Origin: Bugula neritina | Taxonomy: Eukaryota > Animalia > Bryozoa | DNA: 64,000 nt | NCBI GenBank assembly: GCA_964035545.1 | Contig: OZ037766.1 | Coordinates: 18,501,081 to 18,565,080 of the forward strand | Direction of reading: 5' to 3' | Shown: one piece after another, positions 1 through 30,749 of the stretch | Numbering within the stretch: the first letter of the stretch is position 1 | How the letters are laid out: every line of letters begins with the position of its first letter | Made by a program: the position numbers and the translations under genes | Notes under the pieces: generated by a model | Database searches by the model: none | What the model was told of the DNA's origin: nothing | What the model saw: the letters and a program-made list of their open reading frames with translations, nothing else

Positions 1-3000
1 TTCAATAAATTTCAGTATGTTACAGTATATTTCCGTAAATTACACTATACTTCAGTGAGTTGTATATATTTCAGTATCTTGCAGTATATCTCAGTATGTT
101 ACAGTATATTTCAGTATGTTACAGTATATTTCAGTTTGTTACAGTAAATTTCAGTATGTTACAGTGCATTTGCAGATATTACACTATACTTCAGTGAGTT
201 TTAGTGTCTTTCATTATGTTGCAGTATATTTCAGTATGTTGCAGTAATTTGCAATACATTTTGTTATGTTACAGTGTATTTCAGTATGTTGCAGTATATT
301 TCAGTTTGATACAATAAATTTCAGTATGTTACAGTACATTTCCGTAAATTACACTATACTTCAGTGAGTTGTAGTATATTTCAGTATCTTGCAGTATATC
401 TCAGTATGTTACAGTATATTTCAGTATGTTGCAGTATATTTCAGCGTGTTTGAGTATATTTCAGTATGACACAGTGCATTTCCAGATATTACGCTATACT
501 TCAGTGAGTTTTAGTGTCTTTCAGTATGTTGCAGTATATTTCGGTGTTTTGCAACATATTTCAATATGTTGCAATGTATTTCAATATGTTACAGTGTATT
601 TCAGTATGTTGCAGTATGTTGCAATGTATTTCAGTATGTTACAATGTATTTCAGTAGGTTTCAGTATCTTGCAGTATATTTCAGCGTGTTTCAGTATATT
701 TCAGTATGCCACAGTGCATTTTCAGGTTATTCACTATACTTCAGTGAGTTTTAGTGTCTTTCAGTATGTTGCAGTATATTTCGGTATCTTGCAACTTATT
801 TCAATGTGTTGCAATGTAATTCAATATGTTACAGTGTATTTCAGTATGTTGCAGTACATTTCAGTATGTTACAGTATATTTCAGTATGTTGCAGTATATT
901 TCAGTGGGTTATAGCATATTTCAGTATGATACAGCGTATTTCAGTATGTTACAGTGTACTTCAGTATGTTGCAGTATTTTGCAATATATTTCAGTATGTT
1001 ACAGTGTATTTCAGTATGTTGCAGTATATTTCAGTATGTTACAATAAATTTCAGTATGTTACAGTACATTTCCGTAAGTTACACTATACTTCAGGTAGTT
1101 GTAGTATATTTCAGTATCTTGCAGTATATCTCAGTATGTTACAGCATATTGCATTGTGTTGCAGTGTATTTCAATATGTTACAGTGTATTTCAGTATGTT
1201 GCAGTATGTTGCAGTATGCTGCAGTATGTTGCAGTGTATTTCAGTATTTTAGAGTGTATTTCAGTATGTTGCAGTATATTTCAGCATGTTACAGTATATT
1301 TCAGTATGTTGCAGTATATTTCAGTGGGTTATAGTATATTTCAGTATGATACAGCGTATTTCGTTATGTTACAGTGTATGTCAGTATGTTGCAGTATTTT
1401 CCAATGTATTTCAGTATGTTACAGTGTATTTCAGTATGTTGCAGTATAATTGAGTATGTTACAATAAATTTCAGTATGTTACAGTACATTTCCGTAAATT
1501 ACACTATACTTCAGTGAGTTGTAGTATATTTCAGTATCTTGCAGTATATCTCAGTATGTTACAGTATATTTCAGTATGTTACAGTATGTTGCAATGTATT
1601 TCAGTATGTTACAGTGTAATTCAGTATCTTACAGTACATTTCCGTAAATTACACTACACTTCAGTGAGTTGTAGTATATTTCAGTATCTTGCAGTATATC
1701 TCAGTATGTTACAGTATATTTCAGTATGTTACAGTATATTTCAGTGTGTTACAGTAATTTTCAGTATGTTACAGTGCATTTGCAGATATTACACTATACT
1801 TCAGTGAGTTTTAGTGTCTTTCAGTATCTTGCAGTATATTTCAGTATGTTGCAATATTTTGCAATATATTTTAGTATGTTATAGTGTATTTCAGTACGTT
1901 GCAGTATATTTCAGTATGATACAATAAATTTCAGTGTGTTACAGTACATGTCTGCAAATTACACTATACTTCAGTGAGTTGTAGTATATTTCAGTATCTT
2001 GCAGTATATCTCAGTATGTTACAGTTGATTTCAGTATGTTCCGGTATATTTCAGCGTGTTTCAGTATATTTCAGTATGCCACAGTGCATTTTCAGATTAT
2101 TCACTATACTTCAGTGAGTTTTAGTGTCTTTCAGTATGTTGCAGTATATTTCGGTGTTTTGCAACATATTTCAATATGTTGCAATGTATTTCAATATGTT
2201 ACAGTGTATTTCAGTATGTTGCAGTATGTTGCAATGTATTTCAGTATGTTACAGTGTATTTCAGTAGGTTTCAGTATCTTGCAGTATATTTCAGCGTGTT
2301 TCAGTATATTTCAGTATGCCACAGTGCATTTTCAGATTATTCACTATACTTCAGTGAGTTTTAGTGTCTTTCAGTATGTTGCAGTATATTTCGGTATCTT
2401 GCAACTTATTTCAATGTGTTGCAATGTAATTCAATATGTTACAGTGTATTTCAGTATGTTGCAGTACATTTCAGTATGTTACAGTATATTTCAGTATGTT
2501 GCAGTATATTTCAGTGGGTTATAGCATATTTCAGTATGATACAGCGTATTTCAGTATGTTACAGTGTACTTCAGTATGTTGCAGTATTTTGCAATATATT
2601 TCAGTATGTTACAGTGTATTTCAGTATGTTGCAGTATATTTCAGTATGTTACAATAAATTTCAGTATGTTACAGTACATTTCCGTAAGTTACACTATACT
2701 TCAGGTAGTTGTAGTATATTTCAGTATCTTGCAGTATATCTCAGTATGTTACAGCATATTGCATTGTGTTGCAGTGTATTTCAATATGTTACAGTGTATT
2801 TCAGTATGTTGCAGTATGTTGCAGTATGCTGCAGTATGTTGCAGTGTATTTCTGTATTTTACAGTGTATTTCAGTATGTTGCAGTATATTTCAGCATGTT
2901 ACAGTATATTTCAGTATGTTGCAGTATATTTCAGTGGGTTATAGTATATTTCAGTATGATACAGCGTATTTCGTTATGTTACAGTGTATGTCAGTATGTT

Positions 3001-4268
3001 GCAGTATTTTCCAATGTATTTCAGTATGTTACAGTGTATTTCAGTATGTTGCAGTATAATTCAGTATGTTACAATAAATTTCAGTATGTTACAGTACATT
3101 TCCGTAAATTACACTATACTTCAGTGAGTTGTAGTATATTTCAGTATCTTGCAGTATATCTCAGTATGTTACAGTATATTTCAGTATCTTACAGTACATT
3201 TCCGTAAATTACACTACACTTCAGTGAGTTGTAGTATATTTCAGTATCTTGCAGTATATCTCAGTATGTTACAGTATATTTCAGTATGGTACAGTATATT
3301 TCAGTGTGTTACAGTAAATTTCAGTATGTTACAGTGCTTTTGCAGATATCACACTATACTTTAGTGAGTTTTAGTGCCTTTCAGTATGTTACAGTGTATT
3401 TCAGTATGTTGCAGTATTTTGCAATATATATCAGTATGTTACAGTGTATTTCAGTATGTTGCAGTATATTTCAGTATGTTACAATAAATTTCAGTATGTT
3501 ACAGTATATTTCCGTAAATTACACTATACTTCAGTGAGTTGTAGAATATTTCAGTATCTTGCAGTATATCTCAGTATGTTACAGTATATTTCAGTATGTT
3601 ACAGTATATTTCAGTTTGTTACACTAAATTTCAGTATGTTACAGTGCATTTGCAGATATTACACTATACTTCAGTGAGTTTTAGTGTCTTTCATTATGTT
3701 GCAGTATATTTCAGTATGTTGCAGTATTTTGCAATGTATTTCAATATGTTACAGTGTATTTCAGTATGTTGCAGTATGTTGCACTGTATTTCAGTATGTT
3801 ACAGTGTAATTCAGTATCTTACAGTACATTTCCGTAAATTACACTACACTTCAGTGAGTTGTAGTATATTTCAGTATCTTGCAGTATATCTCAGTATGTT
3901 ACAGTATATTTCAGTATGTTACAGTATATTTCAGTTTGTTACAGTAAATTTCAGTATGTCACAGTGCATTTGCAGATATTACACTATACTTCAGTGAGTT
4001 TTAGTGTCTTTCATTATGTTGCAGTATATTTCAGTATGTTGCAGTATTTTGCAATACATTTTATTATGTTACAGTGTATTTCAGTATGTTGCAGTATATT
4101 TCAGTTTCATACAATGAATTTCAGTATGTTACAGTACATTTCCGTAAATTGCACTATACTTCAGTGAGTTGTAGTATATTTCAGTATCTTGCAGTATATC
4201 TCAGTATGTTACAGTATATTTCAGTATGTTGCAGTATATTTCAGCGTGTTTGAGTATATTTCAGTATG
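1..4268 (+). repeat. Satellite array, left arm: 10-bp monomer / 20-bp dimer (CAGTATGTTR-CAGTRTATTT); runs off the window start
   Basis: Uninterrupted decamers with the CAGT core at a fixed position mod 10. It carries the same variant modules as the right arm and a partial internal repeat at 1610-bp offset (ORF-track pairs 426/2036 and 806/2416). Confidence 0.99.
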
Positions 4269-4290
4269 CACAGCATAATTAAGGTCATCC
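4269..4290 (+). repeat. Left terminal inverted repeat (22 bp)
   Basis: CACAGCATAATTAAGGTCATCC, immediately after the TG TSD at 4267-4268. Confidence 0.93.
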
Positions 4291-4536
4291 CCAGTAAAAT
4301 ATTGGCTCATAATCTAGTCTCAGTTCCTAGTTGCTATTGCTCTGTGGGCGGCATGCGTATTGCCTACTTGTCATAATTTAGCATGAGGTTGAACAATTGC
4401 CAACAGACCATCAAACTAGCTAGGGCTGCACCTGTTTATATTACAACCATGGCTACATTCTATTGAGCAAGTATGTGGTCATGGCAAGCCTCAGCATCAC
4501 CTCATTATTATTATTACAAGAGACTAGTGGCTCTTT

Positions 4537-7440
4537 TCATGTGCAATGTACTTGATGTACAAAGGAAGATAATTTTCGTAACTTCTTTTTCAACAAACCA
4601 TGTAAAACTATTTCAGATTCTGAAAGCAAGCTAAATGCTAAAGCTAACTCAATATTTATCCATTTGCCTAGTCTAATAAAGTTGTTAATAATTACAGGCT
4701 TGACTACAACTTTTGAACTTTCAATGCACATATTATTTAAATAACGTGAAAAGGCAGCCGTAACAAATAATTTAGAGATGCTCTTCTCTCAAAGCATAAT
4801 GTTTTTAGGCTAGACTAATAATCTATCTGTTCACTACCATTGACTAACCTAAAGCCAAACTTACCTTCATCATTAAAATCCTCTTTTAGTTGCAAAAACA
4901 CTTCTCAGTGCTAAACTATTACAATCAGTTAAGGACTCTGCACAATAGCTTAGAATAGTAAAGAGACTTGCATATAGATCAGATAGTCATGTGTGAGATT
5001 TTGTTGGTAGCTGTAATGATCAGATATGCAGAATTTTGTGTGGCCACTTTGAGTTTAGATGGTTTGGGTAAAGGATTTGATCGCTGCAAGTTTCTAATAT
5101 AGCTAGTAGGTACTTTTGTGGTCCCATTGTACATTAGTATAAGCAGTAATCAACACTTATTGAAGTGAGTTGGAACTTTGAACTATATAAAATGTTAGAC
5201 CGTGAGCCTGTGCTTTAAATATATTCTATTTGCTCTCTGTTTTATACAGTCTAAACTTTAAAAGGTCCAATCAAGCCTAAATGGCTTCTATCTAAATGTC
5301 CAAAAACTGGCTATGAGCTGTATCTTGTTGCCTTGCACTGAGAAATAAATTTGAGGCCAGCAAACAACTGGGCTCCTTTGTACTCCTGGCAGCTATCAAT
5401 AGTTGGTTATCATAGCTGCGCAGTGTTCACTGAAGCATGATATCATCGGCTTGTATACAAACTCGGAGCCAAGATTATCAACTAATTTATGTTTCTAAAT
5501 TTAGCATCTAATAGAAAAAGCTGTGTCTAGTTAGACTGACTGACCGACACTATGCTTGCCTGAGTGAAACATTCAAGATGAAAAGTTTTAATCTTAGCTA
5601 GACAAGTATTGAGAATTTGAAAAGAAAATTTCCTTAAGATAAAAGAAGATGTCCAGTGAATTCAGTTTTGTTTCCGGCCTGATAGGTGTCAGTTAATCAG
5701 CTCAGATATAACTAGCAATGCATTTTCTATTATTCTGATGCTGCAGTTATAATATTCCATAACAAGAATTGACTCAATAATTTAGGCATATGCAACAAAT
5801 CAACCAGTTTTATTCAAGTTAACACCAGATAGCCATTGCTAAAGATCAAAACGAAAATCAGTGTGGATTTTCAAACATAGTATAATATATATACACGTAT
5901 GATCAGGCATAGAAGTAGCAAGTTCAATGAATAATGTAAACATGCAGAAGGTGTAACAGCTGTATACTATTGTGAAGGAATAAGTCAGGACTTGTCATAG
6001 CAATACATCCTATAAGTATATTACAAACATGGGAGAAATAATAGGTTAGTTCCCTAATTACTTTTCTTGAACATACATTACAATATTGAATGTCAAAACT
6101 GATTTTGTAAAAAAGCAGAATCTATAAAAATTCAAGCTGCAAAAGCCTAACCAAAAGGCACATTGCTGGGGTGATTAGTCCTGTCAATTATTAATAATTT
6201 TAGTTTTTACATCTGGTAATAAAAGTCCTATTTTTGCAGGTAGAGTCTTGATATATAGGTGTCAGTTGTAGAGTATTATGCTTTTTAAACATAAAAATAT
6301 ATCGTCTTGCAAGAGTATAGAGAATCTAAAGATCCTAAAAGCTGATGCTGACATAGAAAGGATGTCCTGAGTACACATGCTATAGCATTTCTTTGACAAA
6401 ACCTAATCATCTAGTAGCCCACTTGTTTTTGGAACTCAATCTAAAAATATAAATAGCAGTTTTCTCAATACATTGAAAAGTAATTTGCAACATTTTGAAT
6501 TTGAATTAACATGTTCATACACCACATGCAGTTAGTACTATAGTAATCTTATATATTCTGTAAAATCTACCTATACTGTAATCATGCAGATCAAAGCTGC
6601 CTGCTGGTGACTTTTTAAAAAACACAGCTCATAATTACAATTACTATTAGGTTGGATGCTCCCTTGAAATTGTATTTTTCAAATAATTTCTTAGTAGATA
6701 TGATGGCCATGATGACTCCAATTCTTTTGAAACATATGCTTATAATGTATTTTAAGTTGGTCACTCACAGTAAATGTAGTTAGGTATGCAAGTAGTAGTA
6801 CAATTAGAGTTACTAAACAAAAGATTTTTAGTGCAAAACTATATTTTCTATGTGCCTACTCAACTACAGTACTCTAAATAATTGGAGAAAAAAGTGATAG
6901 TCAATAATAAATTTGGCCATTTTTCTTAGAGTTAATTACATAATGATGAAATGAACTCTGACAATTTTGATCTAGTCTTACAGTCTTAGTAATAGTTCTA
7001 CCATCAATGCATTCCTATTATACTATGCCTTTTTTATGAATATAAAACTCAATTTTGAAGTTTAGTTATACTGTGCAATGCTATAATAATAATAGTAATA
7101 TGAATATAGTAATAGTTATAGTACACAGTATAGGTCTACTGTAATACTAATAGTACAACTATACAAATTCTATAAAATTATCAAAAATAACTATATTATT
7201 GCTTGAAAGCAATATGAAATATGCGAATTTGCTGAAGGAAGCAGTGATATTCACTTACCCTTGAAGTTAAACTTTTAAAGTTAATCAAAGTACACTCTTT
7301 CATCCTAGGTTTGAGAGGTAAAAGACGTTTTTCACTCCATTTTAAAATGATAATCCCACCGCCAGTTGGCAAGTTCACTTCACAGATTGCGTTTTAACAT
7401 CGAAGTTTTTATTTACGAAGCTAGCTTTTACTAGTAACAT
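4537..7440 (-). pseudogene. Putative decayed spliced gene B inside the transposon (about 9 exons, roughly 680 codons, unknown product with an N-proximal hydrophobic segment)
   Basis: Candidate exons: 7440-7259, 6873-6769, 6723-6571, 6440-6062, 6009-~5901, 5838-5560, 5494-5161, 5093-4865, 4809-4537. Canonical donors are GTAAGT (7258, 4864), GTGAGT (6768), GTAGAT (6570) and GTAATT (6061); two are non-canonical (GC at 5559, AT at 5160). Several acceptors are pyrimidine-rich AG sites. Most introns are 45-67 nt, some with CTAAC/CTGAT motifs, and three exons are phase 0/0 (105, 153, 279 nt). It has many stops and several frameshifts. Confidence 0.55.
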
Positions 7441-7777
7441 ATCCAATCGGGCAAGATAAGTAACGCTTACAGCTACGTATGATATTATGCAGAGCAGTTA
7501 GTTTGAGGACAGTGCACTGCAGCAGCGGAATGACTAGGGTAGGTTTTGGGAGGGGTGAATATGAATTATAAACGTTCTATGTGCTTTTTTGAAAGCATTA
7601 TGATAGCATGCGCTTTAGTCATTTATATATAAAATAAAACTTATTGTTTTATAAATTATAATTTACTTATTTATCTATTTTACTATTGTTTTAAAAAATT
7701 GATAAAACTTTGAACACCCCCTCATAATACCACAACCACACTCCACTCCTTTAGTTATAACCTAATTAGATTAGAAG

Positions 7778-9119
7778 TCACATCTTCAATACAAACAAGC
7801 TATTCCGATGTCTGCTGCTGGCATTAGCTTGAAACTGCAGTGAAGCTCTTACTGAGCTAGTAGACTGAAAGTGCACTACCTATAGTTATCTACCAATGTA
7901 ATGAATTGGTGTAAGCAGTAAAGGAAATGAGTAGTATATATGTGTACAGAAACTTGTACTCAAATGCTAGAACCCCATAGTTATGGTTATTTGAGATTCA
8001 GTCAGGTCCAAAAGAAATCGTGAAATTAAATACCCATTTATTTTACATCATGCTGAATCTGGTCACATAATTGACTATTTAAAGCTAATTGTAATTAAAA
8101 CCATATTGCAATATAAAATAACCTGCCTAAGTTGCTCATTATTGACAAGTAGTCTAGTTGGGCATTTAAGTTCAAATTCGCGTGAGCTCATTTCAGCTAA
8201 AAATAGCAGCACCTTGTCACTGGGTATGAAGGGCTGGTCACTGCCAGAGCCATTAGCAAAATGGCTTACTGCTATTGCAAGCCTGCTACATACAAGCCTC
8301 TTACGTGCAAGCACTATTTATCAATCAGAAACTACTTATTTAATTGTAAGCTACCAGAATTTTAATACTTTATTATAAAAAAAAGTTGCCTGGTAGGTGC
8401 AATAGCAGAAAAGCTTAAACAGCCTATAAGTTCTTAAATTTTTCAAGAAATTCTAATTTGGTAACCTGTCGGAATTCTCTCTAAACTTCTTAAGCTGCAT
8501 CTCACTGCCTATAATAGGCCCAATAATACGAAATGCAGGGTTTAATTTCTCAATACCCTCATCACTGCACACACCACATACTTATACTTAGCTGATAAGA
8601 CTTTACTACTATTGTTTACAGAAAATTATGCAATTACTATTCAATTGACTAAGAATTCCCTCCAACAATTTTGTAGACTCCGGAAAAAAAATTTAATGTT
8701 TTAAAATAATTTGGTTACAAATGTATTATTAGAATAATTTAGATTACTCTACAGAACAATAAATTTGCTTTGAAATCACACACAAAAGGTATAAAATTTA
8801 GTGGCTTTAACTTTCACTAGCATCCTAAGATGTCTGGGTTATCATGCAGGCTGTATTACTAAACTGCTTTGCACTAGAAAGAAACAAGTCGAAGCAGGAA
8901 ATGTATGCAGGCTTCAGAAACTGCTTTATATAAATATACGACTGAAATCTAGATTCAGAGTAGATTGCACATTGTACAGCCTCGCGTCCATAGGCAGTAC
9001 AGCAATATTGCAACAGCCGGATTACAATTACTAAGCTACTATCTAATAACCAGTCTATACCATGTAATTAGTTTAGTGCAGAGATGAACTTTAACCCTTT
9101 GGTTTAGCGCGCAAAACAT
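7778..9119 (-). pseudogene. Putative decayed spliced gene A inside the transposon (about 5 exons, roughly 330 codons, unknown product)
   Basis: Candidate minus-strand exons: ~9119-8810 (ATG at 9119; ~80 open codons 9067-8828), ~8680-8390, 8313-8123 (open, LARKRLVCSRL...NNEQLRQ), 8058-7960 and 7879-7778 (open to TGA). GT-AG introns of 64 nt (8122-8059) and 80 nt (7959-7880) keep phase 0. It has several in-frame stops and at least one frameshift, and the first two junctions are uncertain. Confidence 0.5.
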
Positions 9120-9212
9120 GAATCTTAGGTCGCGCGAGCTCCCTGCAATCAGTGATGGCTAGTATAACAGCGCAGCTCTACGGCGTTCAGCCAAGCGTGC
9201 AGACTAAGCGAG
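9107..9212 (-). promoter_or_regulatory. CpG-rich patch, candidate promoter / 5' region of gene A
   Basis: A cluster of CpGs (gcgcgc, tcgcgcga, gcgc, acggcg, gcgt, gcga) in an otherwise CpG-poor element. It overlaps and lies upstream of the minus-strand ATG at 9119. Confidence 0.35.
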
Positions 9213-9288
9213 AAGTAAAATTTTTAATAAAATCAGTGTATAAATTACACGTTTACACCAATTCTATTGAGGTTATCTGAAAACTTTG

Positions 9289-9561
9289 AAAAGCCTCTAA
9301 TAGACAAATATCTTATAACTCTCTGTTTCAATTTTTGGAGAGATCTGTTGCTTAGGAATTGAATAATTCGTGGGGCACTGAGACCATGTTTTTTTATGCG
9401 AAAATGGGCAATTTTTGACTGTTTTTGAAGCATAAAAATGCAACGAGTTTGGCAGGTAAAGATTTTAAAAAAGCCTCTAATAGAGCAGCAAATGATTTAC
9501 AAGATGGTTTTTGAATTTTGATTCTAGCCTCAAAATTAGTTGAGTTATGAGTGGGGCACTG
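9289..9561 (+). repeat. Subterminal bipartite direct repeat of the transposon right end (two units, ~180-bp period)
   Basis: AAAAGCCTCTAATAGA is exact at 9289-9304 and 9469-9484. GTGGGGCACTG is exact at 9370-9380 and 9551-9561. The intervening sequence has diverged but keeps its length. Confidence 0.85.
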
Positions 9562-9609
9562 TTTCATATATAATTATAATGGAGCAATGAAATTACTGAT
9601 TCAGTAGAA

Positions 9610-9631
9610 GGGTGACCTTAATCAAGCTGTG
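9610..9631 (-). repeat. Right terminal inverted repeat (22 bp)
   Basis: GGGTGACCTTAATCAAGCTGTG, immediately followed by the TG TSD at 9632-9633. Confidence 0.93.
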
Positions 9632-9889
9632 TGACACAGTGCATTTCCAGATATTACGCTATACTTCAGTGAATTTTAGTGTCTTTCATTATGTTGCAAT
9701 GTATTTCAGTATGTTACAGTGTATTTCAGTAGGTTTCAGTATCTTGCAGTATATTTCAGCATGTTGCAGTATATTTCAGGATGTTGCAGTATATTTCAGT
9801 ATGTTACAGTGTTTTGCAGTATTTTGCAGTATATTTCAGTGTGTTACAGTATATTTCATTATGTTGCGGTATGTTACAGTGTATTTCAG

Positions 9890-12800
9890 TATGTTGCAGT
9901 ATATTTCAGCGTGTTTGAGTATATTTCAGTATGACACAGTGCATTTCCAGATATTACGCTATACTTCAGTGAGTTTTAGTGTCTTTCAGTATGTTGCAGT
10001 ATATTTCGGTGTTTTGCAACATATTTCAATATGTTGCAATGTATTTCAATATGTTACAGTGTATTTCAGTATGTTGCAGTATGTTGCAATGTATTTCAGT
10101 ATGTTACAGTGTATTTCAGTAGGTTTCAGTATCTTGCAGTATATTTCAGCGTGTTTCAGTATATTTCAGTATGCCACAGTGCATTTTCAGATTATTCACT
10201 ATACTTCAGTGAGTTTTAGTGTCTTTCAGTATGTTGCAGTATATTTCGGTATCTTGCAACTTATTTCAATGTGTTGCAATGTAATTCAATATGTTACAGT
10301 GTATTTCAGTATGTTGCAGTACATTTCAGTATGTTACAGTATATTTCAGTATGTTGCAGTATATTTCAGTGGGTTATAGCATATTTCAGTATGATACAGC
10401 GTATTTCAGTATGTTACAGTGTACTTCAGTATGTTGCAGTATTTTGCAATATATTTCAGTATATTACAGTGTATTTCAGTATGTTGCAGTATATTTCAGT
10501 ATGTTACAATAAATTTCAGTATGTTACAGTACATTTCCGTAAGTTACACTATACTTCAGGTAGTTGTAGTATATTTCAGTATCTTGCAGTATATCTCAGT
10601 ATGTTACAGCATATTGCATTGTGTTGCAGTGTATTTCAATATGTTACAGTGTATTTCAGTATGTTGCAGTATGTTGCAGTATGCTGCAGTATGTTGCAGT
10701 GTATTTCTGTATTTTACAGTGTATTTCAGTATGTTGCAGTATATTTCAGCATGTTACAGTATATTTCAGTATGTTGCAGTATATTTCAGTGGGTTATAGT
10801 ATATTTCAGTATGATACAGCGTATTTCGTTATGTTACAGTGTATGTCAGTATGTTGCAGTATTTTCCAATGTATTTCAGTATGTTACAGTGTATTTCAGT
10901 ATGTTGCAGTATAATTCAGTATGTTACAATAAATTTCAGTATGTTACAGTACATTTCCGTAAATTACACTATACTTCAGTGAGTTGTAGTATATTTCAGT
11001 ATCTTGCAGTATATCTCAGTATGTTACAGTATATTTCAGTATCTTACAGTACATTTCCGTAAATTACACTACACTTCAGTGAGTTGTAGTATATTTCAGT
11101 ATCTTGCAGTATATCTCAGTATGTTACAGTATATTTCAGTATGTTACAGTATATTTCAGTGTGTTACAGTAAATTTCAGTATGTTACAGTGCTTTTGCAG
11201 ATATCACACTATACTTTAGTGAGTTTTAGTGCCTTTCAGTATGTTACAGTGTATTTCAGTATGTTGCAGTATTTTGCAATATATATCAGTATGTTACAGT
11301 GTATTTCAGTATGTTGCAGTATATTTCAGTATGTTACAATAAATTTCAGTATGTTACAGTATATTTCCGTAAATTACACTACACTTCAGTGAGTTGTAGA
11401 ATATTTCAGTATCTTGCAGTATATCTCAGTATGTTACAGTATATTTCAGTATGTTACAGTATATTTCAGTTTGTTACACTAAATTTCAGTATGTTACAGT
11501 GCATTTGCAGATATTACACTATACTTCAGTGAGTTTTAGTGTCTTTCATTATGTTGCAGTATATTTCAGTATGTTGCAGTATTTTGCAATGTATTTCAAT
11601 ATGTTACAGTGTATTTCAGTATGTTGCAGTATGTTGCAATGTATTTCAGTATGTTACAGTGTAATTCAGTATCTTACAGTACATTTCCGTAAATTACACT
11701 ACACTTCAGTGAGTTGTAGTATATTTCAGTATCTTGCAGTATATCTCAGTATGTTACAGTATATTTCAGTATGTTACAGTATATTTCAGTTTGTTACAGT
11801 AAATTTCAGTATGTCACAGTGCATTTGCAGATATTACACTATACTTCAGTGAGTTTTAGTGTCTTTCATTATGTTGCAGTATATTTCAGTATGTTGCAGT
11901 ATTTTGCAATACATTTTATTATGTTACAGTGTATTTCAGTATGTTGCAGTATATTTCAGTTTGATACAATGAATTTCAGTATGTTACAGTACATTTCCGT
12001 AAATTGCACTATACTTCAGTGAGTTGTAGTATATTTCAGTATCTTGCAGTATATCTCAGTATGTTACAGTATATTTCAGTATGTTGCAGTATATTTCAGC
12101 GTGTTTGAGTACATTTCAGTATGACACAGTGCATTTCCAGATATTACGCTATACTTCAGTGAGTTTTAGTGTCTTTCAGTATGTTGCAGTATATTTCGGT
12201 GTTTTGCAACATAATTCAATATGTTGCAATGTATTTCAATATGTTACAGTGTATTTCAGTATGTTGCAGTATGTTGCAATGTATTTCAGTATGTTACAGT
12301 GTATTTCAGTAGGTTTCAGTATCTTGCAGTATATTTCAGCGTGTTTCAGTATATTTCAGTATGCCACAGTGCATTTTCAGATTATTCACTATACTTCAGT
12401 GAGTTTTAGTGTCTTTCAGTATGTTGCAGTATATTTCGGTATCTTGCAACTTATTTCAATGTGTTGCAATGTAATTCAATATGTTACAGTGTATTTCAGT
12501 ATGTTGCAGTACATTTCAGTATGTTACAGTATATTTCAGTATGTTGCAGTATATTTCAGTGGGTTATAGCATATTTCAGTATGATACAGCGTATTTCAGT
12601 ATGTTACAGTGTACTTCAGTATGTTGCAGTATTTTGCAATATATTTCAGTATATTACAGTGTATTTCAGTATGTTGCAGTATATTTCAGTATGTTACAAT
12701 AAATTTCAGTATGTTACAGTACATTTCCGTAAGTTACACTATACTTCAGGTAGTTGTAGTATATTTCAGTATCTTGCAGTATATCTCAGTATGTTACAGC

Positions 12801-14270
12801 ATATTGCATTGTGTTGCAGTGTATTTCAATATGTTACAGTGTATTTCAGTATGTTGCAGTATGTTGCAGTATGCTGCAGGATGTTGCAGTGTATTTCTGT
12901 ATTTTACAGTGTATTTCAGTATGTTGCAGTATATTTCAGCATGTTACAGTATGTTTCAGTATGTTGCAGTATATTTCAGTGGGTTATAGCATATTTCAGT
13001 ATGATACAGCGTATTTCGTTATGTTACAGTGTATGTCAGTATGTTGCAGTATTTTCCAATGTATTTCAGTATGTTACAAAGTATTTCAGTATGTTGCAGT
13101 ATAATTCAGTATGTTACAATAAATTTCAGTATGTTACAGTACATTTCCGTAAATTACACTATACTTCAGTGAGTTGTAGTATATTTCAGTATCTTGCAGT
13201 ATATCTCAGTATGTTACAGTATATTTCAGTATCTTACAGTACATTTCCGTAAATTACACTACACTTCAGTGAGTTGTAGTATATTTCAGTATCTTGCAGT
13301 ATATCTCAGTATGTTACAGTATATTTCAGTATGTTACAGTATATTTCAGTGTGTTACAGTAAATTTCAGTATGTTACAGTGCTTTTGCAGATATCACACT
13401 ATACTTTAGTGAGTTTTAGTGCCTTTCAGTATGTTACAGTGTATTTCAGTATGTTGCAGTATTTTGCAATATATATCAGTATGTTACAGTGTATTTCAGT
13501 ATGTTGCAGTATATTTCAGTATGTTACAATAAATTTCAGTATGTTACAGTATATTTCCGTAAATTACACTACACTTCAGTGAGTTGTAGAATATTTCAGT
13601 ATCTTGCAGTATATCTCAGTATGTTACAGTATATTTCAGTATGTTACAGTATATTTCAGTTTGTTACACTAAATTTCAGTATGTTACAGTGCATTTGCAG
13701 ATATTACACTATACTTCAGTGAGTTTTAGTGTCTTTCATTATGTTGCAGTATATTTCAGTATGTTGCAGTATTTTGCAATGTATTTCAATATGTTACAGT
13801 GTATTTCAGTATGTTGCAGTATGTTGCAATGTATTTCAGTATGTTACAGTGTAATTCAGTATCTTACAGTACATTTCCGTAAATTACACTACACTTCAGT
13901 GAGTTGTAGTATATTTCAGTATCTTGCAGTATATCTCAGTATGTTACAGTATATTTCAGTATGTTACAGTATATTTCAGTTTGTTACAGTAAATTTCAGT
14001 ATGTCACAGTGCATTTGCAGATATTACACTATACTTCAGTGAGTTTTAGTGTCTTTCATTATGTTGCAGTATATTTCAGTATGTTGCAGTATTTTGCAAT
14101 ACATTTTATTATGTTACAGTGTATTTCAGTATGTTGCAGTATATTTCAGTTTGATACAATGAATTTCAGTATGTTACAGTACATTTCCGTAAATTGCACT
14201 ATACTTCAGTGAGTTGTAGTATATTTCAGTATCTTGCAGTATATCTCAGTATGTTACAGTATATTTCAGT
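9890..14270 (+). repeat. 2190-bp higher-order repeat domain (two tandem copies; related copies at ~2036-4268 and ~23940-28010)
   Basis: Variant strings recur at +2190 (ORF-track pairs 10271/12461, 11141/13331, 12081/14271; marker aaattgcact at 12001 and 14191). Confidence 0.9.
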
Positions 14271-17009
14271 ATGTTGCAGTATATTTCAGCGTGTTTGAGT
14301 ACATTTCAGTATGACACAGTGCATTTCCAGATATTACGCTATACTTCAGTGAGTTTTAGTGTCTTTCAGTATGTTGCAGTATATTTCGGTGTTTTGCAAC
14401 ATATTTCAATATGTTGCAATGTATTTCAATATGTTACAGTGTATTTCAGTATGTTGCAGTATGTTGCAATGTATTTCAGTATGTTACAGTGTATTTCAGT
14501 AGGTTTCAGTATCTTGCAGTATATTTCAGCATGTTGCAGTATATTTCAGGATGTTGCAGTATATTTCAGTATGTTACAGTGTTTTGCAGTATTTTGCAGT
14601 ATATTTCAGTGTGTTACAGTATATTTCATTATGTTGCGGTATGTTGCAGTATATTTCAGTAGTTTGCAACATATTTCAGTAGGTTACCATATATTTCGGT
14701 ATGTTGCAGCATATTTCAAGGTGTTGCAGTGTATTTCAATATGTTACAGTGTATTTCAGTCTGTTGCAGTATGTTCCATTATGCTGCAGTGTATTTCTGT
14801 ATGTTACAGTGTATTTCAGTATGTTGCAGTACATTTCAGTATGTTACAGTATATTTCAGTATGTTGCAGTATATTTCAGTGGGTTATAGCATATTTCAGT
14901 ATGATACAGCGTATTTCAGTATGTTACAGTGTACTTCAGTATGTTGCAGTATTTTGCAATATATTTCAGTATGTTACAGTGTATTTCAGTATGTTGCAGT
15001 ATAATTCAGTATGTTACAATAAATTTCAGTGTGTTACAGTACATTTCCGTAAATTACACTATACTTCAGTGAGTTGTAGTATATTTGAGTATCTTGCAGT
15101 ATATCTCAGTATGTTACAATATATTTCAGTATCTTACAGTACATTTCCGTAAATTACACTACACTTCAGTGAGTTGTAGTATATTTCAGTATCTTGCAGT
15201 ATTTCTCAGTATGTTACAGTATATTTCAGTATGTTACAGTATATTCCAGTCTGTTACAGTAAATTTCAGTATGTTAAAGTGCATTTGCAGATATTACACT
15301 ATACTTTAGTGAGTTTTAGTGTCTTTCAGTATCTTGCAGTATATTTCAGTATGTTGCAGTATTTTGCAATATATTTTAGTATGTTACGGTGTATTTCAGT
15401 ACGTTGCAGTATATTTCAAAATGATACAATAAATTTCAGTGTGTTCCAGTACATTTCTGCAAATTACACTATACTTCAGTGAGTTGTAGTATATTTCAGT
15501 ATCTTGCAGTATATCTCAGTATGTTACAGTTGATTTCAGTATGTTCCAGTATATTTCAGCGTGTTTCAGTATATTTCAGTATGCCACAGTGCATTTTCAG
15601 ATTTTTCACTATACTTCAGTGAGTTTTAGTGTCTTTCAGTATGTTGCAGTATATTTCGGTATCTTGCAACTTATTTCAATGTGTTGCAATGTAATTCCAT
15701 ATGTTACAGTGTATTTCAGTATGTTGCAGTATGTTGCAGTGTATTTCAGTATGTTACAGTGTATTTCAGTAGGTTTCAGTATCTTGCAGTATATTTCAGT
15801 ATGTTGCAGTATATTTCAGTGGGTTACAGTATATTCCAGTATGTTCCAGTATGTTGCAGTATATTTCAGGATGTTGCAGTGTATTTCATTATGTTACAGT
15901 GTATTTCAGTGGTTTGCAACATATTTTAGTAGGTTACCATATATTTCGGTATGTTGCAGCATATTTCAATGCGTTGCAGTGTATTTCAATATGTTACAGT
16001 GTATTTCAGTATGTTGCAGTATGTTGCAGTGTATTTCTGTATGTTACGGTGTAGTTCAGTATGTTGCAGTATATTTCAGTATGTTACAGTATGTTTCAGT
16101 ATGTTGCAGTATATTTCGGTATCTTGCAACTTATTTCAATGTGTTGCAATGTAATTCAATATGTTACAGTGTATTTCAGTACGTTGCAGTACATTTCAGT
16201 ATGTTACAGTATATTTCAGTATGTTGCGGTATATTTCAGTGGGTTATAGCTTATTTCAGTATGATACAGCGTATTTCAGTATGTTACAGTGTACTTCAGT
16301 ATGTTGCAGTATTTTGCAATATATTTCAGTATGTTACAGTGTATTTCAGTATGTTGCAGTATATTTCAGTATGTTACAATAAATTTCAGTATGTTACAGT
16401 ACATTTCCGTAAGTTACACTATACTTCAGGTAGTTGTAGTATATTTCAGTATCTTGCAGTATATCTCAGTATGTTACAGCATATTTCATTGTGTTGCAGT
16501 GTATTTCAATATGTTACAGTGTATTTCAGTATGTTGCAGTATGTTGCAGTATGCTGCAGTATGTTGCAGTGTATTTCTGTATTTTACAGTGTATTTCAGT
16601 ATGTTGCAGTATATTTCAGCATGTTACAGTATATTTCAGTATGTTGCAGTATATTTCAGTGGGTTATAGTATATTTCAGTATGATACAGCGTATTTCGTT
16701 ATGTTACAGTGTATGTCAGTATGTTGCAGTATTTTCCAATGTTTTTCAGTATGTTACAGTGTATTTCAGTATGTTGCAGTATAATTCAGTATGTTACAAT
16801 AAATTTCAGTATGTTACAGTACATTTCCGTAAATTACACTATACTTCAGTGAGTTGTAGTATATTTCAGTATCTTGCAGTATATCTCAGTATTTTACAGT
16901 ATATTTCAGTATCTTACAGTACATTTCCGTAAATTACACTACACTTCAGTGAGTTGTAGTATATTTCAGTATCTTGCAGTATATCTCAGTATGTTACAGT
17001 ATATTTCAG

Positions 17010-20000
17010 TATGTTACAGTATATTTCAGTGTGTTACAGTAAATTTCAGTATGTTACAGTGCTTTTGCAGATATCACACTATACTTTAGTGAGTTTTAGT
17101 GCCTTTCAGTATGTTACAGTGTATTTCAGTATGTTGCAGTATTTTGCAATATATATCAGTATGTTACAGTGTATTTCAGTATGTTGCAGTATATTTCAGT
17201 ATGTTACAGTAAATTTCAGTATGTTACAGTATATTTCCGTAAATTACACTATAATTCAGTGAGTTGTAGAATATTTCAGTATCTTGCAGTATATCTCAGT
17301 ATGTTACAGTATATTTCAGTATGTTACAGTATATTTCAGTTTGTTACAGTAAATTTCAGTATGTTACAGTGCATTTGCAGATATTACACTATACTTCAGT
17401 GAGTTTTAGTGTCTTTCATTATGTTGCAGTATATTTCAGTATGTTGCAGTATTTTGCAATGTAATTCAATATGTTACAGTGTATTTCAGTATGTTACAGT
17501 GTATTTCAGTATGTTGCAGTATTTTGCAATATATATCAGTATGTTACAGTGTATTTCAGTATGTTGCAGTATATTTCAGTATGTTACAATAAATTTCAGT
17601 ATGTTACAGTATATTTCCGTAAATTACACTATACTTCAGTGAGTTGTAGTATATTTCAGTATCTTGCAGTATATCTCAGTATGCTACAGTATATTTCAGT
17701 ATGTTACAGTATATTTCAGTTTGTTACAGTAAATTTCAGTATGTTACAGTGCATTTGCAGATATTACACTATACTTCAGTGAGTTTTAGTGTCTTTCATT
17801 ATGTTGCAGTATATTTCAGTATGTTGCAGTATTTTGCAATACATTTTATTATGTTACAGTGTATTTCAGTATGTTGCAGTATATTTCAGTTTGATACAAT
17901 AAATTTCAGTATGTTACAGTACATTTCCGTAAATTACACTATAATTCAGTGAGTTGTAGTATATTTCAGTATCTTGCAGTATATCTCAGTATGTTACAGT
18001 ATATTTCAGTATGTTACAGTATATTTCAGTGTGTTACAGTAAATTTCAGTATGTTACAGTGCATTTGCAGATATTACACTATACTTTAGTGAGTTTTAGT
18101 GTCTTTCAGTATCTTGCAGTATATTTCAGTATGTTGCAATATTTTGCAATATATTTTAGTATGTTACAGTGTATTTCAGTACGTTGCAGTATATTTCAGT
18201 ATGATACAATAAATTTCAGTGTGTTACAGTACATTTCTGCAAATTACAGTATACTTCAGTGAGTTGTAGTATATTTCAGTATCTTGCAGTATATCTCAGT
18301 ATGTTACAGTTGATTTCAGTATGTTCCAGTATATTTCAGCGTGTTTCAGTATATTTCAGTATGCCACAGTGCATTTTCAGATTTTTCACTATACTTCAGT
18401 GAGTTTTAGTGTCTTTCAGTGTGTTGCAGTATATTTCGGTATCTTGCAACTTATTTCAATGTGTTGCAATGTAATTCAATATGTTACAGTGTATTTCAGT
18501 ATGTTGCAGTTTTTTGCAGTGTATTTCAGTATGTTACAGTGTATTTCAGTAGGTTTCAGTATCTTGCAGTATATCTCAGTGTGTTGCAGTATATTTCAGT
18601 GGGTTACAGTATATTCCAGTATGTTCCAGTATGTTGCAGTATATTTCAGGATGTTGCAGTGTATTTCATTATGTTACAGTGTATTTCAGTGGTTTGCAAC
18701 ATATTTCAGTAGGTTACCATGTATTTCGGTATGTTGCAGCATATTTCAATGTGTTGCAGTGTATTTCAATATGTTACAGTGTATTTCAGTATGTTGCAGT
18801 ATGTTGCAGTGTATTTCTGTATGTTACGGTGTAGTTCAGTATGTTGCAGTATATTTCAGTATGTTACAGTATGTTTCAGTATGTTGCAGTATATTTCCGT
18901 GGGTTATAGTATATTCCAGTATGATACAGCGTATTTCAGTATGTTACAGTGTATTTCAGTATGTTGCAGTATTTTGCAATGCATTTCAGTATGTTACACT
19001 GTATTTCAGTATGTTGCAGTATATTTCAGTATTTTACAATAAATTTCAGTATATTACAGTACATTTCCGTAAATTACACTATACTTCAGTGAGTTGTAGT
19101 ATATTTCAGTATCATGCAGTATATCTCAGTATGTTACAGTATATTTCAGTATGTTACAGTATGTTTCAGTGTGTTACAGTATGTTGCAGTATATTTCAGT
19201 AGTTTGCAACATATTTCAGTAGGTTACCATATATTTCGGTATGTTGCAGCATATTTCAATGTGTTGCAGTGTATTTCAATATGTTACAGTGTATTTCAGT
19301 ATGTTGCAGTATGTTGCAGTATGATGCAGCATGTTGCAGTGTATTTCTGTATGTTACAGTGTAATTCAGAATGTTGCAGTATATTTCAGTATGTTACAGT
19401 ATGTTTCAGTATGTTGCAGTATATTTCAGTGGGTTATAGTATATTTCAGTATGATACAGCGTATTTCAGTATGTTACAGTGTATTTCAGTATATTTCAGT
19501 ATGTTACAATAAATTTCAGTATGTTACAGTACATTGCCGTAAATTACACTATACTTCAGTGAGTTGTAGTATATTTCAGTATCTTGCAGTATATCTCAGT
19601 ATGTTACTGTATATTTCAGTATGTTACAGTATATTTCAGTGTGTTACAGTAAATTTCAGTATGTTACAGTGCATTTGCAGATATTACACTATACTTTAGT
19701 GAGTTTTAGTGTCTTTCAGTATGTTGCAGTATATTTCAGTATGTTGCAGTATTTTGCAATATATATCAGTATGTTACAGTGTATTTCCGTAAATTACTCT
19801 ATACTTCAGTGAGTTGTAGTATATTATAGTATCTTGCAGTATATCTCAGTATGTTACAGTATATTTCAGTATGTTACAATAAATTTCAGTATGTTACAGT
19901 ATATTTCCGTAAATTACTCTATACTTCAGTGAGTTGTAGTATATTATAGTATCTTGCAGTATATCTCAGTATGTTACAGTATATTTCAGTATGTTACAGT

Positions 20001-23000
20001 ATATTTCAGTTTGTTACAGTAAATTTCAGTATGTTACAGTGCTTTTGCAGATATCACACTATACTTTAGTGAGTTTTAGTGCCTTTCAGTATGTTACAGT
20101 GTATTTCAGTATGTTGCAGTATTTTGCAATATATATCAGTATGTTACAGTGTATTTCAGTATGTTGCAGTATATTTCAGTATGTTACAGTAAATTTCAGT
20201 ATGTTACAGTATATTTCTGTAAATTACACTATAATTCAGTGAGTTGTAGAATATTTCAGTATCTTGCAGTATATCTCAGTATGTTACAGTATATTTCAGT
20301 ATGTTACAGTATATTTCAGTTTGTTACAGTAAATTTCAGTATGTTACAGTGCATTTGCAGATATTACACTATACTTCAGTGAGTTTTAGTGTCTTTCATT
20401 ATGTTGCAGTATATTTCAGTATGTTGCAGTATTTTGCAATGTATTTCAATATGTTACAGTGTATTTCAGTAGGTTGCAGTATGTTGCAATGTATTTCAGT
20501 ATGTTACAGTGTAATTCAGTATCTTACAGTACATTTCCGTAAATTACACTACACTTCAGTGAGTTGTAGTATATTTCAGTATCTTGCAGTATATCTCAGT
20601 ATGTTACAGTATATTTCAGTATGTTACAGTATATTTCAGTGTGTTACAGTGCATTTGCAGATATTACACTATACTTCAGTGAGTTTTAGTGTCTTTCATT
20701 ATGTTGCAGTATATTTCAGTATGTTGCAGTATTTTGCAATGTAATTCAATATGTTACAGTGTATTTCAGTATGTTACAGTGTATTTCAGTATGTTGCAGT
20801 ATTTTGCAATATATATCAGTATGTTACAGTGTATTTCAGTATGTTGCAGTATATTTCAGTATGTTACAATAAATTTCAGTATGTTACAGTATATTTCCGT
20901 AAATTACACTATACTTCAGTGAGTTGTAGTATATTTCAGTATCTTGCAGTATATCTCAGTATGCTACAGTATATTTCAGTATGTTACAGTATATTTCAGT
21001 TTGTTACAGTAAATTTCAGTATGTTACAGTGCATTTGCAGATATTACACTATACTTCAGTGAGTTTTAGTGTCTTTCATTATGTTGCAGTATATTTCAGT
21101 ATGTTGCAGTATTTTGCAATACATTTTATTATGTTACAGTGTATTTCAGTATGTTGCAGTATATTTCAGTTTGATACAATAAATTTCAGTATGTTACAGT
21201 ACATTTCCGTAAATTACACTATAATTCAGTGAGTTGTAGTATATTTCAGTATCTTGCAGTATATCTCAGTATGTTACAGTATATTTCAGTATGTTACAGT
21301 ATATTTCAGTGTGTTACAGTAAATTTCAGTATGTTACAGTGCATTTGCAGATATTACACTATACTTTAGTGAGTTTTAGTGTCTTTCAGTATCTTGCAGT
21401 ATATTTCAGTATGTTGCAATATTTTGCAATATATTTTAGTATGTTACAGTGTATTTCAGTACGTTGCAGTATATTTCAGTATGATACAATAAATTTCAGT
21501 GTGTTACAGTACATTTCTGCAAATTACAGTATACTTCAGTGAGTTGTAGTATATTTCAGTATCTTGCAGTATATCTCAGTATGTTACAGTTGATTTCAGT
21601 ATGTTCCAGTATATTTCAGCGTGTTTCAGTATATTTCAGTATGCCACAGTGCATTTTCAGATTTTTCACTATACTTCAGTGAGTTTTAGTGTCTTTCAGT
21701 GTGTTGCAGTATATTTCGGTATCTTGCAACTTATTTCAATGTGTTGCAATGTAATTCAATATGTTACAGTGTATTTCAGTATGTTGCAGTTTTTTGCAGT
21801 GTATTTCAGTATGTTACAGTGTATTTCAGTAGGTTTCAGTATCTTGCAGTATATCTCAGTGTGTTGCAGTATATTTCAGTGGGTTACAGTATATTCCAGT
21901 ATGTTCCAGTATGTTGCAGTATATTTCAGGATGTTGCAGTGTATTTCATTATGTTACAGTGTATTTCAGTGGTTTGCAACATATTTCAGTAGGTTACCAT
22001 GTATTTCGGTATGTTGCAGCATATTTCAATGTGTTGCAGTGTATTTCAATATGTTACAGTGTATTTCAGTATGTTGCAGTATGTTGCAGTGTATTTCTGT
22101 ATGTTACGGTGTAGTTCAGTATGTTGCAGTATATTTCAGTATGTTACAGTATGTTTCAGTATGTTGCAGTATATTTCCGTGGGTTATAGTATATTCCAGT
22201 ATGATACAGCGTATTTCAGTATGTTACAGTGTATTTCAGTATGTTGCAGTATTTTGCAATGCATTTCAGTATGTTACACTGTATTTCAGTATGTTGCAGT
22301 ATATTTCAGTATTTTACAATAAATTTCAGTATATTACAGTACATTTCCGTAAATTACACTATACTTCAGTGAGTTGTAGTATATTTCAGTATCATGCAGT
22401 ATATCTCAGTATGTTACAGTATATTTCAGTATGTTACAGTATGTTTCAGTGTGTTACTGTATGTTGCAGTATATTTCAGTAGTTTGCAACATATTTCAGT
22501 AGGTTACCATATATTTCGGTATGTTGCAGCATATTTCAATGTGTTGCAGTGTATTTCAATATGTTACAGTGTATTTCAGTATGTTGCAGTATGTTGCAGT
22601 ATGATGCAGCATGTTGCAGTGTATTTCTGTATGTTACAGTGTAATTCAGAATGTTGCAGTATATTTCAGTATGTTACAGTATGTTTCAGTATGTTGCAGT
22701 ATATTTCAGTGGGTTATAGTATATTTCAGTATGATACAGCGTATTTCAGTATGTTACAGTGTATTTCAGTATGTTGCAGTATTTTGCAATATATTTCAGT
22801 ATGTTACAGCGTATTTCAGTATGTTGCAGTATATTTCAGTATGTTACAATAAATTTCAGTATGTTACAGTACATTGCCGTAAATTACACTATACTTCAGT
22901 GAGTTGTAGTATATTTCAGTATCTTGCAGTATATCTCAGTATGTTACTGTATATTTCAGTATGTTACAGTATATTTCAGTGTGTTACAGTAAATTTCAGT

Positions 23001-23760
23001 ATGTTACAGTGCATTTGCAGATATTACACTATACTTTAGTGAGTTTTAGTGTCTTTCAGTATGTTGCAGTATATTTCAGTATGTTGCAGTATTTTGCAAT
23101 ATATATCAGTATGTTACAGTGTATTTCCGTAAATTACTCTATACTTCAGTGAGTTGTAGTATATTATAGTATCTTGCAGTATATCTCAGTATGTTACAGT
23201 ATATTTCAGTATGTTACAATAAATTTCAGTATGTTACAGTATATTTCCGTAAATTACTCTATACTTCAGTGAGTTGTAGTATATTATAGTATCTTGCAGT
23301 ATATCTCAGTATGTTACAGTATATTTCAGTATGTTACAGTATATTTCAGTTTGTTACAGTAAATTTCAGTATGTTACAGTGCTTTTGCAGATATCACACT
23401 ATACTTTAGTGAGTTTTAGTGCCTTTCAGTATGTTACAGTGTATTTCAGTATGTTGCAGTATTTTGCAATATATATCAGTATGTTACAGTGTATTTCAGT
23501 ATGTTGCAGTATATTTCAGTATGTTACAGTAAATTTCAGTATGTTACAGTATATTTCTGTAAATTACACTATAATTCAGTGAGTTGTAGAATATTTCAGT
23601 ATCTTGCAGTATATCTCAGTATGTTACAGTATATTTCAGTATGTTACAGTATATTTCAGTTTGTTACAGTAAATTTCAGTATGTTACAGTGCATTTGCAG
23701 ATATTACACTATACTTCAGTGAGTTTTAGTGTCTTTCATTATGTTGCAGTATATTTCAGT
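17010..23760 (+). repeat. ~3340-bp HOR domain, first block (units of 2980 and 3340 bp)
   Basis: The gcttttgcag-containing module recurs at ORF starts 17011, 19991 and 23331. Markers tttttgcagt, acattgccgt and a doubled aaattactct recur once per unit. Confidence 0.85.
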
Positions 23761-29700: not shown

Positions 29701-30749
29701 ATATTTCAATGCGTTGCAGTGTATTTCAATATGTTACAGTGTATTTCAGTATGTTGCAGTATGTTGCAGTGTATTTCTGTATGTTACGGTGTAGTTCAGT
29801 ATGTTGCAGTATATTTCAGTATGTTACAGTATGTTTCAGTATGTTGCAGTATATTTCGGTATCTTGCAACTTATTTCAATGTGTTGCAATGTAATTCAAT
29901 ATGTTACAGTGTATTTCAGTACGTTGCAGTACATTTCAGTATGTTACAGTATATTTCAGTATGTTGCGGTATATTTCAGTGGGTTATAGCTTATTTCAGT
30001 ATGATACAGCGTATTTCAGTATGTTACAGTGTACTTCAGTATGTTGCAGTATTTTGCAATATATTTCAGTATGTTACAGTGTATTTCAGTATGTTGCAGT
30101 ATATTTCAGTATGTTACAATAAATTTCAGTATGTTACAGTACATTTCCGTAAGTTACACTATACTTCAGGTAGTTGTAGTATATTTCAGTATCTTGCAGT
30201 ATATCTCAGTATGTTACAGCATATTTCATTGTGTTGCAGTGTATTTCAATATGTTACAGTGTATTTCAGTATGTTGCAGTATGTTGCAGTATGCTGCAGT
30301 ATGTTGCAGTGTATTTCTGTATTTTACAGTGTATTTCAGTATGTTGCAGTATATTTCAGCATGTTACAGTATATTTCAGTATGTTGCAGTATATTTCAGT
30401 GGGTTATAGTATATTTCAGTATGATACAGCGTATTTCGTTATGTTACAGTGTATGTCAGTATGTTGCAGTATTTTCCAATGTTTTTCAGTATGTTACAGT
30501 GTATTTCAGTATGTTGCAGTATAATTCAGTATGTTACAATAAATTTCAGTATGTTACAGTACATTTCCGTAAATTACACTATACTTCAGTGAGTTGTAGT
30601 ATATTTCAGTATCTTGCAGTATATCTCAGTATTTTACAGTATATTTCAGTATCTTACAGTACATTTCCGTAAATTACACTACACTTCAGTGAGTTGTAGT
30701 ATATTTCAGTATCTTGCAGTATATCTCAGTATGTTACAGTATATTTCAG

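Follow-up and report, generated by a model that had tools for sequence, protein, structure and literature searches.

The 5.4-kb insert that interrupts the 64-kb stretch of Bugula neritina DNA analysed here (the window) is a genuine cut-and-paste transposon, and it is best explained, with a probability of roughly 0.85, as a non-autonomous element of the CMC or 'CMCT' type that is moved in trans by the transposase of autonomous relatives. The enzyme, a transposase of RAG1/Transib-like (CMC-type) character, is most likely borrowed from relatives of 12 kb located at other sites of the genome. As befits a non-autonomous derivative, the termini of the insert match those of a transposase-encoding element, the insert has no transposase of its own and it bears evidence of mobility. 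The original prediction had considered a transposase-less element with the CAC ends and 2-bp target site duplication (TSD) of the CMC kind, which agrees with the present results, and had further proposed two hidden genes and possibly a novel system; the latter lead is now removed, and the insert can be regarded as an ordinary non-autonomous transposon.

The transposon is the sole break detected by Tandem Repeats Finder in the satellite of the window, and the coordinates of its parts are collected in Table 1. Both the clean terminal inverted repeats (TIRs), starting with CACAG and ending with CTGTG, and the TG duplication that had been described for this insert were recovered. Of the claimed subterminal repeats, one degenerate two-copy direct repeat at the right end is the only one found, and no short subterminal motif array was enriched in a motif search at the element ends. 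The interior is found only in copies of the family of the window element, and the autonomous element has an unrelated interior. A contig in the public run X1 joins position 4244 to 9636 and possibly represents an empty site, but this joint is ambiguous because it lies within satellite DNA.

Table 1. Coordinates of the transposon and neighbouring features in the 64-kb window of Bugula neritina
Feature	Position	Strand	Description	Evidence
Transposon insert	4269..9631		5.4 kb, 5363 bases	
Satellite array left of insertion	9..4268	.	20-bp unit, 310-bp higher-order repeat	Tandem Repeats Finder and sequence
Same satellite array right of insertion	9690..63990	.		Tandem Repeats Finder
TSD, left copy	4267..4268	.	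TG	Sequence and flank comparison
TSD, right copy	9632..9633	.	TG	Sequence and flank comparison
Left TIR	4269..4290	+	begins CACAGCATA	Repeat search: 22 nt, 86% complementary
Right TIR	9610..9631	-	ends CTGTG	Repeat search
Left arm	4269..5640	.	common to autonomous 12.4-kb elements; without coding evidence	blastn, 73-87% identity
Interior	5641..8123	.	family-specific	No coding signal on either strand
Right arm	8124..9631	.	common to autonomous elements	blastn, 70-87% identity
Direct repeat	9285..9565 (~9285-9385, ~9465-9565)	+	degenerate, two copies, ~180 bp spacing	Repeat search

The family comprises about 40 copies in the 216-Mb genome (at least 40 matches for the element ends and about 40 for the interior), which form two subfamilies that are approximately 80% alike. 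CACAG...CTGTG termini are present in all 28 inspected copies, point mutations aside, and the 2-bp flanks agree in 26 of them (20 of the 21 copies with a length near 5.3 kb, and six of the seven long ones). The sequence of the TSD varies among copies, with no target sequence preference. About one-third of the copies are located in one very abundant 20-bp satellite. Because a twin copy at another site, with other flanks and another TSD, differs from the window element at 8 positions over 5363 bases, the element has moved very recently, and the family is active now or was so until very recently. In six of the eight long copies the extra length consists of unrelated insertions nested at differing positions in a 5.3-kb unit, and these six were therefore rejected as autonomous elements.

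The window element is apparently non-coding. Its longest stop-to-stop frames (127 aa on the plus strand and 83 aa on the minus strand) are not above those of shuffled sequence, in agreement with the earlier observation that long open reading frames are missing. It had further been proposed that protein-like blocks alternate with introns and assemble into two spliced minus-strand genes arranged head to tail (A, 9119-7778, and B, 7440-4537), which would form a cargo cassette or belong to a multi-gene family as accessory genes; consistent with such genes, the window copy has several open frames of 80-83 aa on the minus strand, and both subfamilies retain the full-length interior. However, stops or frameshifts interrupt these frames in most of the other copies, so that they are preserved no better than frames on the plus strand, no codon (three-base) periodicity is visible in the 677 differences that are fixed between the subfamilies, and identity between the subfamilies is flat along the element. 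Majority sequences, for which a failure to restore open frames had been named in advance as a refuting outcome, restored no frame beyond the length expected from shuffled sequence, and a Pfam search of the element gave no significant match. Moreover, parts of A and B fall in the arms common to the autonomous element, whose gene occupies the opposite strand. A search of public sequencing runs detected the element in no RNA run. Four public runs that contain the element (Logan contigs) have even coverage and no intron-like joints, although these runs look like DNA and are uninformative on transcription. Two real genes at this locus are thus highly improbable; the element does not appear to carry a cargo cassette and is not a novel multi-gene system. 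Transcription, or very short exons, could conceivably occur within the element, and it is very doubtful that its interior encodes something functional. The idea that the element is autonomous in its own right and hides a strongly diverged transposase in tiny exons draws on nothing but the 5.3-kb size and has a practically negligible probability, as tblastn with nine full-length transposase homologues yielded nothing below E=1 in the element while the same nine queries recovered 5-7 exons in the autonomous copy, and the element carries no coding signal.

The 2.5-kb interior might alternatively be cargo that functions without coding, whether as a regulatory sequence, as a long non-coding RNA or as a cis element required for efficient transposition, which would account for the persistence of the 5.3-kb form in place of shrinkage to MITEs. 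The structure has kept its full length in both subfamilies despite a divergence of about 20%, possibly a hint that the interior is required in cis; only three short derivatives (987, 1177 and 2139 bp) were seen, and a few 60-bp bins are conserved above average (5469-5528 at 0.95, and 7749-7868 at 0.91-0.93). Nevertheless, the interior has diverged as much as the arms, no Rfam family was detected across the whole window, and constant length is expected if all copies stem from a few master copies, so that such a function appears improbable.

The recommended search for longer or autonomous copies with the same TIRs identified two long copies of 12.4-15.9 kb that encode a transposase (G000 C6:7085149-7097590 and C4:15502832-15518728), and these are the likely partners for the mobilisation in trans that had been suggested. 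Their product, encoded on the plus strand in multiple exons, is a RAG1/Transib/CACTA-like DDE transposase of about 900-1100 aa. The C4 and C6 copies are 98.7-99.3% alike and hence young, and every matched exon of the C6 copy is open. An HTH_Tnp_4 match in the C4 copy belongs to a separate nested element. Over their first 27 nt and their last 50 nt, which are likeliest to be the recognised parts, both copies have exactly the sequence of most 5.3-kb copies, and the window copy differs from it by one base at each end. The 22-nt CACAG inverted ends together with the subterminal arms of about 1.4 kb are presumably recognised by the transposase of the family, and this enzyme is probably supplied in trans by the 12.4-15.9-kb autonomous relatives, e.g. 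the C6 and C4 copies. Transposition produces the 2-bp target duplication.

As identity between the arms of the C4 and C6 copies and those of the 5.3-kb copies is only 72-89%, the 5.3-kb copies are not recent deletion derivatives of this lineage. The same low identity would be compatible with a non-autonomous element that takes its transposase from another source, for instance from the copy at C3:12191824, one exon of which shows 84% amino-acid identity, or from another related lineage. Further transposase lineages are present in the genome; in total, a query with one transposase exon produced 19 genomic matches, one of them at 84% and a set of six identical ones at 69%. Such a source is possible but rather unlikely given the shared termini, the youth of the C4 and C6 copies and the open exons of the C6 copy, and the C4/C6 transposase lineage is probably the mover of the window element.

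The catalytic core of the partner copies contains, in order, D, D, CxC, H(4)H and E. By fold comparison, the predicted core has a RAG1/Transib/CACTA-like catalytic fold, resembling CACTA (Transposase_21/DUF4218) and Plavaka models, and by analogy its cutting chemistry may be like that of RAG1/Transib. Only the fold comparison was successful in this respect, since a profile of the transposase homologues had no significant match among PDB sequences. The homologues were collected with region 430-960 of P0079, as the whole protein, including its variable N-terminal half, matched only itself. None of the Pfam models Transposase_21, DUF4218, Plavaka, DUF1258 and RAG1 matched the exons, eight long homologues or 37 alignment members at E<=10; the sole Pfam match on the homologues was a SAP domain, found in six of the 37 and lying inside the core of some. 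Profile scans of the genome gave no match to PF02992 or PF06869; as their controls likewise gave no signal, these scans are weak tests.

The CMC/'CMCT' clade includes EnSpm/CACTA, Mirage, Chapaev, Transib, Plavaka, ESTA, as well as Lanisha, and its elements are recognised by 5'-CA(C)...(G)TG-3' termini and short TSDs of 2-5 bp (PMC12730594, PMC4079192). For the transposase, the criterion applied was a DDE enzyme in which C(2)C and H(3-4)H lie after the second D but before the E. The window element has CA(C)...(G)TG termini and a TSD within this range but encodes no DDE transposase, and therefore its membership of the clade is limited to that of a non-autonomous element. Its partner departs from the clade in the one-residue spacing of the Cys pair (CxC versus the two-residue C(2)C), in the failure of the clade Pfam models to match either the partner or its homologues, and in the SAP domain of some homologues. 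Mirage, a CMC lineage described from nematodes, makes 2-bp TSDs, and the window element resembles it in this feature and in its CAC ends. However, no HMM match was obtained to PF06869 (DUF1258), which we take to be a nematode Mirage-related family, the only link being an ESM-feature lead of 0.85 that is under the 0.9 level, and the hosts of the transposase homologues are sponge, cnidarian, mollusc and amphioxus. Compared with Transib, RAG1 and ProtoRAG (BbRAGL), the TSD is 2 bp versus 5 bp, sequence identity is 12-14% with no match to any Pfam RAG1 family, and no RAG2-like second gene was seen. The classical non-autonomous CACTA elements dSpm/I of maize retain both the ends and the subterminal regions of their autonomous counterpart, have no functional transposase and depend on mobilisation in trans. 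The window element likewise keeps ends and arms, lacks a transposase and is probably mobilised in trans; unlike dSpm/I, it contains 2.5 kb of unrelated sequence, so that a simple internal deletion in the known autonomous copies would not produce it, and its lineage is old relative to the C4 and C6 copies. Some members of PIF/Harbinger-ISL2EU (PHIS) also make 2-bp TSDs. This assignment was rejected, as the partner and its homologues have no DDE_Tnp_4-type Pfam match and the fold is RAG1-like.

Very tentatively, the family may represent an undescribed animal CMCT lineage, whose core would be RAG1/Transib-like, with the zinc motif in a CxC variant and, in some members, a SAP insertion, and whose elements would have RSS-heptamer-like CACAG ends and make a 2-bp TSD. 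This lineage would occur in sponges, cnidarians, molluscs and amphioxus and would be active to this day in B. neritina, where the window element would be a long non-autonomous partner that was mobilised recently. The satellite location of about one-third of the copies bears on where such elements insert or survive, and a transposase of RAG1/Transib fold that is associated with 2-bp duplications could help to compare how this group of enzymes sets the spacing of target cuts.

The element at window 4269-9631 starts with CACAGCATAATTAAGGTCATCC and ends in its imperfect reverse complement (22 nt, 86%), with TG at both flanks. Each of its 432-nt ends has at least 40 matches in the 216-Mb assembly, and the 2.4-kb interior is found there in ~40 places, every one of them within a copy of the same family. 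Among 28 fetched copies, 20 of ~5.3 kb and eight longer, the two bases outside the termini agree between left and right in 26, and since these dinucleotides vary from copy to copy (TG, TA, TT, AC, CA, AA, GG, AT, TC, GA), the family makes a true, non-specific 2-bp target-site duplication (TSD). The original prediction of a clean transposon is thus well founded. Two subfamilies, with 93-99% and ~83% identity to the window copy, respectively, both keep the 5.3-kb structure, and six of the eight long copies consist of the 5.3-kb unit plus unrelated nested insertions at differing sites. The element has moved very recently, since a copy on contig C192 matches that of the window at all but 8 of 5363 positions, has no indels relative to it, and occupies another satellite position with another TSD (TA). 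Three short derivatives with both family ends are MITE-like internal deletions.

Two head-to-tail spliced genes on the minus strand (9119-7778 and 7440-4537) had been proposed to fill the element as part of a possibly novel system. However, identity between the subfamilies is flat at ~80% over the full element, with no exon/intron alternation along it. When each stop-to-stop frame of at least 35 aa in the window copy was traced through the other copies, minus-strand frames survived in 32% (subfamily A) and 13% (subfamily B) of the copies, no better than the plus-strand control (47% and 7%, respectively), and frameshifts struck most of the traced frames. Three-base periodicity was absent at the 677 positions fixed differently between the subfamilies (0 of 86 sliding windows at p<0.01). 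By the refutation criterion named with the original prediction, the gene hypothesis fails because the subfamily majority sequences do not restore open frames: at 96 and 75 aa, the longest ones are level with or below the mean maxima of shuffled sequence (94 and 90 aa), and a 324-aa frame in an autonomous copy served as positive control of this test. A Pfam search with the ten longest frames of the element gave nothing significant (best E 0.003, below the cut-off of its family), and an Rfam search of the window returned no family. Public runs containing the element, which are contig sets and not RNA, show even coverage and no intron-like joints. The suggestions of two genes and of a novel system are therefore not supported.

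The end search also yielded two longer, autonomous copies, one on contig C4 and one on C6, with a mutual identity of 98.7-99.3%. What these copies have in common with the window element is confined to the arms (window 4269-5640 and 8124-9631, 70-87% identity). Over the first 27 nt and the last 50 nt they match most 5.3-kb copies exactly, the window copy being one base off at each end, and their arms are only 72-89% identical to those of the 5.3-kb copies. Between the arms lies a chain of protein-like exons on the plus strand, opposite to that of the proposed genes, with a first frame of 324 aa and the motifs LWHDHSD, FSGDNPARQ..GQQCGG, CIC, FHCLTVH and AESAERHF. The exon with H(4)H is frameshifted in the C4 copy relative to the C6 copy. 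The C4 copy also houses a nested element with one frame bearing a PIF/Harbinger-type HTH_Tnp_4 domain (E 1.6e-12), and both copies carry, directly after the exon of the second catalytic D, a microsatellite of unequal length.

Coordinates of the element family, its satellite setting and related transposase loci (C, contigs of the same assembly; L, fetched loci with internal coordinates)
Feature	Location	Remarks
Satellite array	window 9-4268 and 9690-63990	sole interruption 4269-9631
Satellite-inserted copies	flanks of L025, L027, L028, L029, L031, L035, L036, L038; C8:798436-811817, C5:9744340-9753873	
Autonomous copy	C4:15502832-15518728 (L050+L051)	TSDs of the C4 and C6 copies, CA and TT
Autonomous copy	C6:7085149-7097590 (L052+L053)	12.4 kb
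Nested element in C4 copy	L051:2414-5902 (C4:15513214-15516702)	3.5 kb; inverted repeats of ~260 bp at its bounds
(TA)n-type microsatellite	L052:5110-5200	
Short derivatives	C6:6447531-6448517; C7:11002595-11003771; C6:9546947-9549085	~1.0, ~1.2 and ~2.1 kb
Identical open exon versions	C1:13970688, C2:25000258, C3:1153144, C4:18582047, C6:6395799, C6:6141722	69% amino-acid identity

The transposase exons were searched singly and unjoined, and natural homologues were used for analyses of full-length protein. Searched against 1.84 billion representatives, the 135-aa exon at L053:1-405, from the C6 copy, gave 426 protein hits at E<=0.001. The long homologues come from Argopecten irradians and Branchiostoma lanceolatum, where they are uncharacterised, and from metagenome ORFs, with Nematostella vectensis and Ephydatia muelleri contributing further ones in another search. 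They align collinearly with three to seven exons of the autonomous copy and had no match below E=1 in the window element. Residues invariant among them are W/D, D, CxC, E..HD, G..H(4)H and E..E. Pfam recognised no domain in the homologues except SAP (6 of 37); in some of them (P0183, P0186, P0188) this domain (PF02037) sits within the catalytic core, after the Cys pair and before the His pair, and the Pfam model does not pick up the corresponding exon of the genome's own copy (L052:5488-5637). The core of the homologue P0079 (residues 395-965) has a confidently predicted fold (mean pLDDT 91.5, pTM 0.92), for which the best solved structures in Foldseek are RAG1 (E 1e-7), BbRAGL and HzTransib, and the nearest named ESM Atlas clusters are plant CACTA transposases (Transposase_21/DUF4218, TM 0.58), Plavaka (TM 0.54/0.68) and RAG1 (TM 0.53/0.60).

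In its termini, TSD, His pair and fold the present family agrees with the CMC/CMCT clade, but it differs in that its Cys pair is CxC, some members have the SAP insertion and no curated sequence model of the clade matches it. Chapaev elements have CAC...GTG ends and TSDs of 3-4 bp (PMC4079192). The tested transposase exon has 19 matches in the genome, one at 84% amino-acid identity, and the six loci with identical versions (69%) appear to form a second, very young lineage within this transposase family.

The 64-kb window is a single satellite array with a 20-bp unit, ATTTCAGTATGTTACAGTAT (~72% matches), and a 310-bp higher-order repeat; in public runs its words are orders of magnitude deeper than the element. 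The same satellite houses 10 of 29 inspected copies (~1/3), perhaps because satellite DNA is a preferred target, perhaps because copies survive better in it. In the public run X1, one contig connects 4244 to 9636 and skips the element; it may represent an empty allele, but a different stretch of the satellite could give the same junction.

The element lacks an enzyme of its own, shares ends and arms with the autonomous copies and has moved recently, in line with the original suggestions of a transposase-less derivative and of mobilisation in trans. The transposase of an autonomous relative, of the C4/C6 or another lineage, would bind the common termini and arms and excise the element, which would then be reinserted through cuts staggered by 2 bp; hairpin intermediates could be proposed only by analogy with RAG1/Transib. 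The element is by itself of low interest, and its family is moderately interesting.
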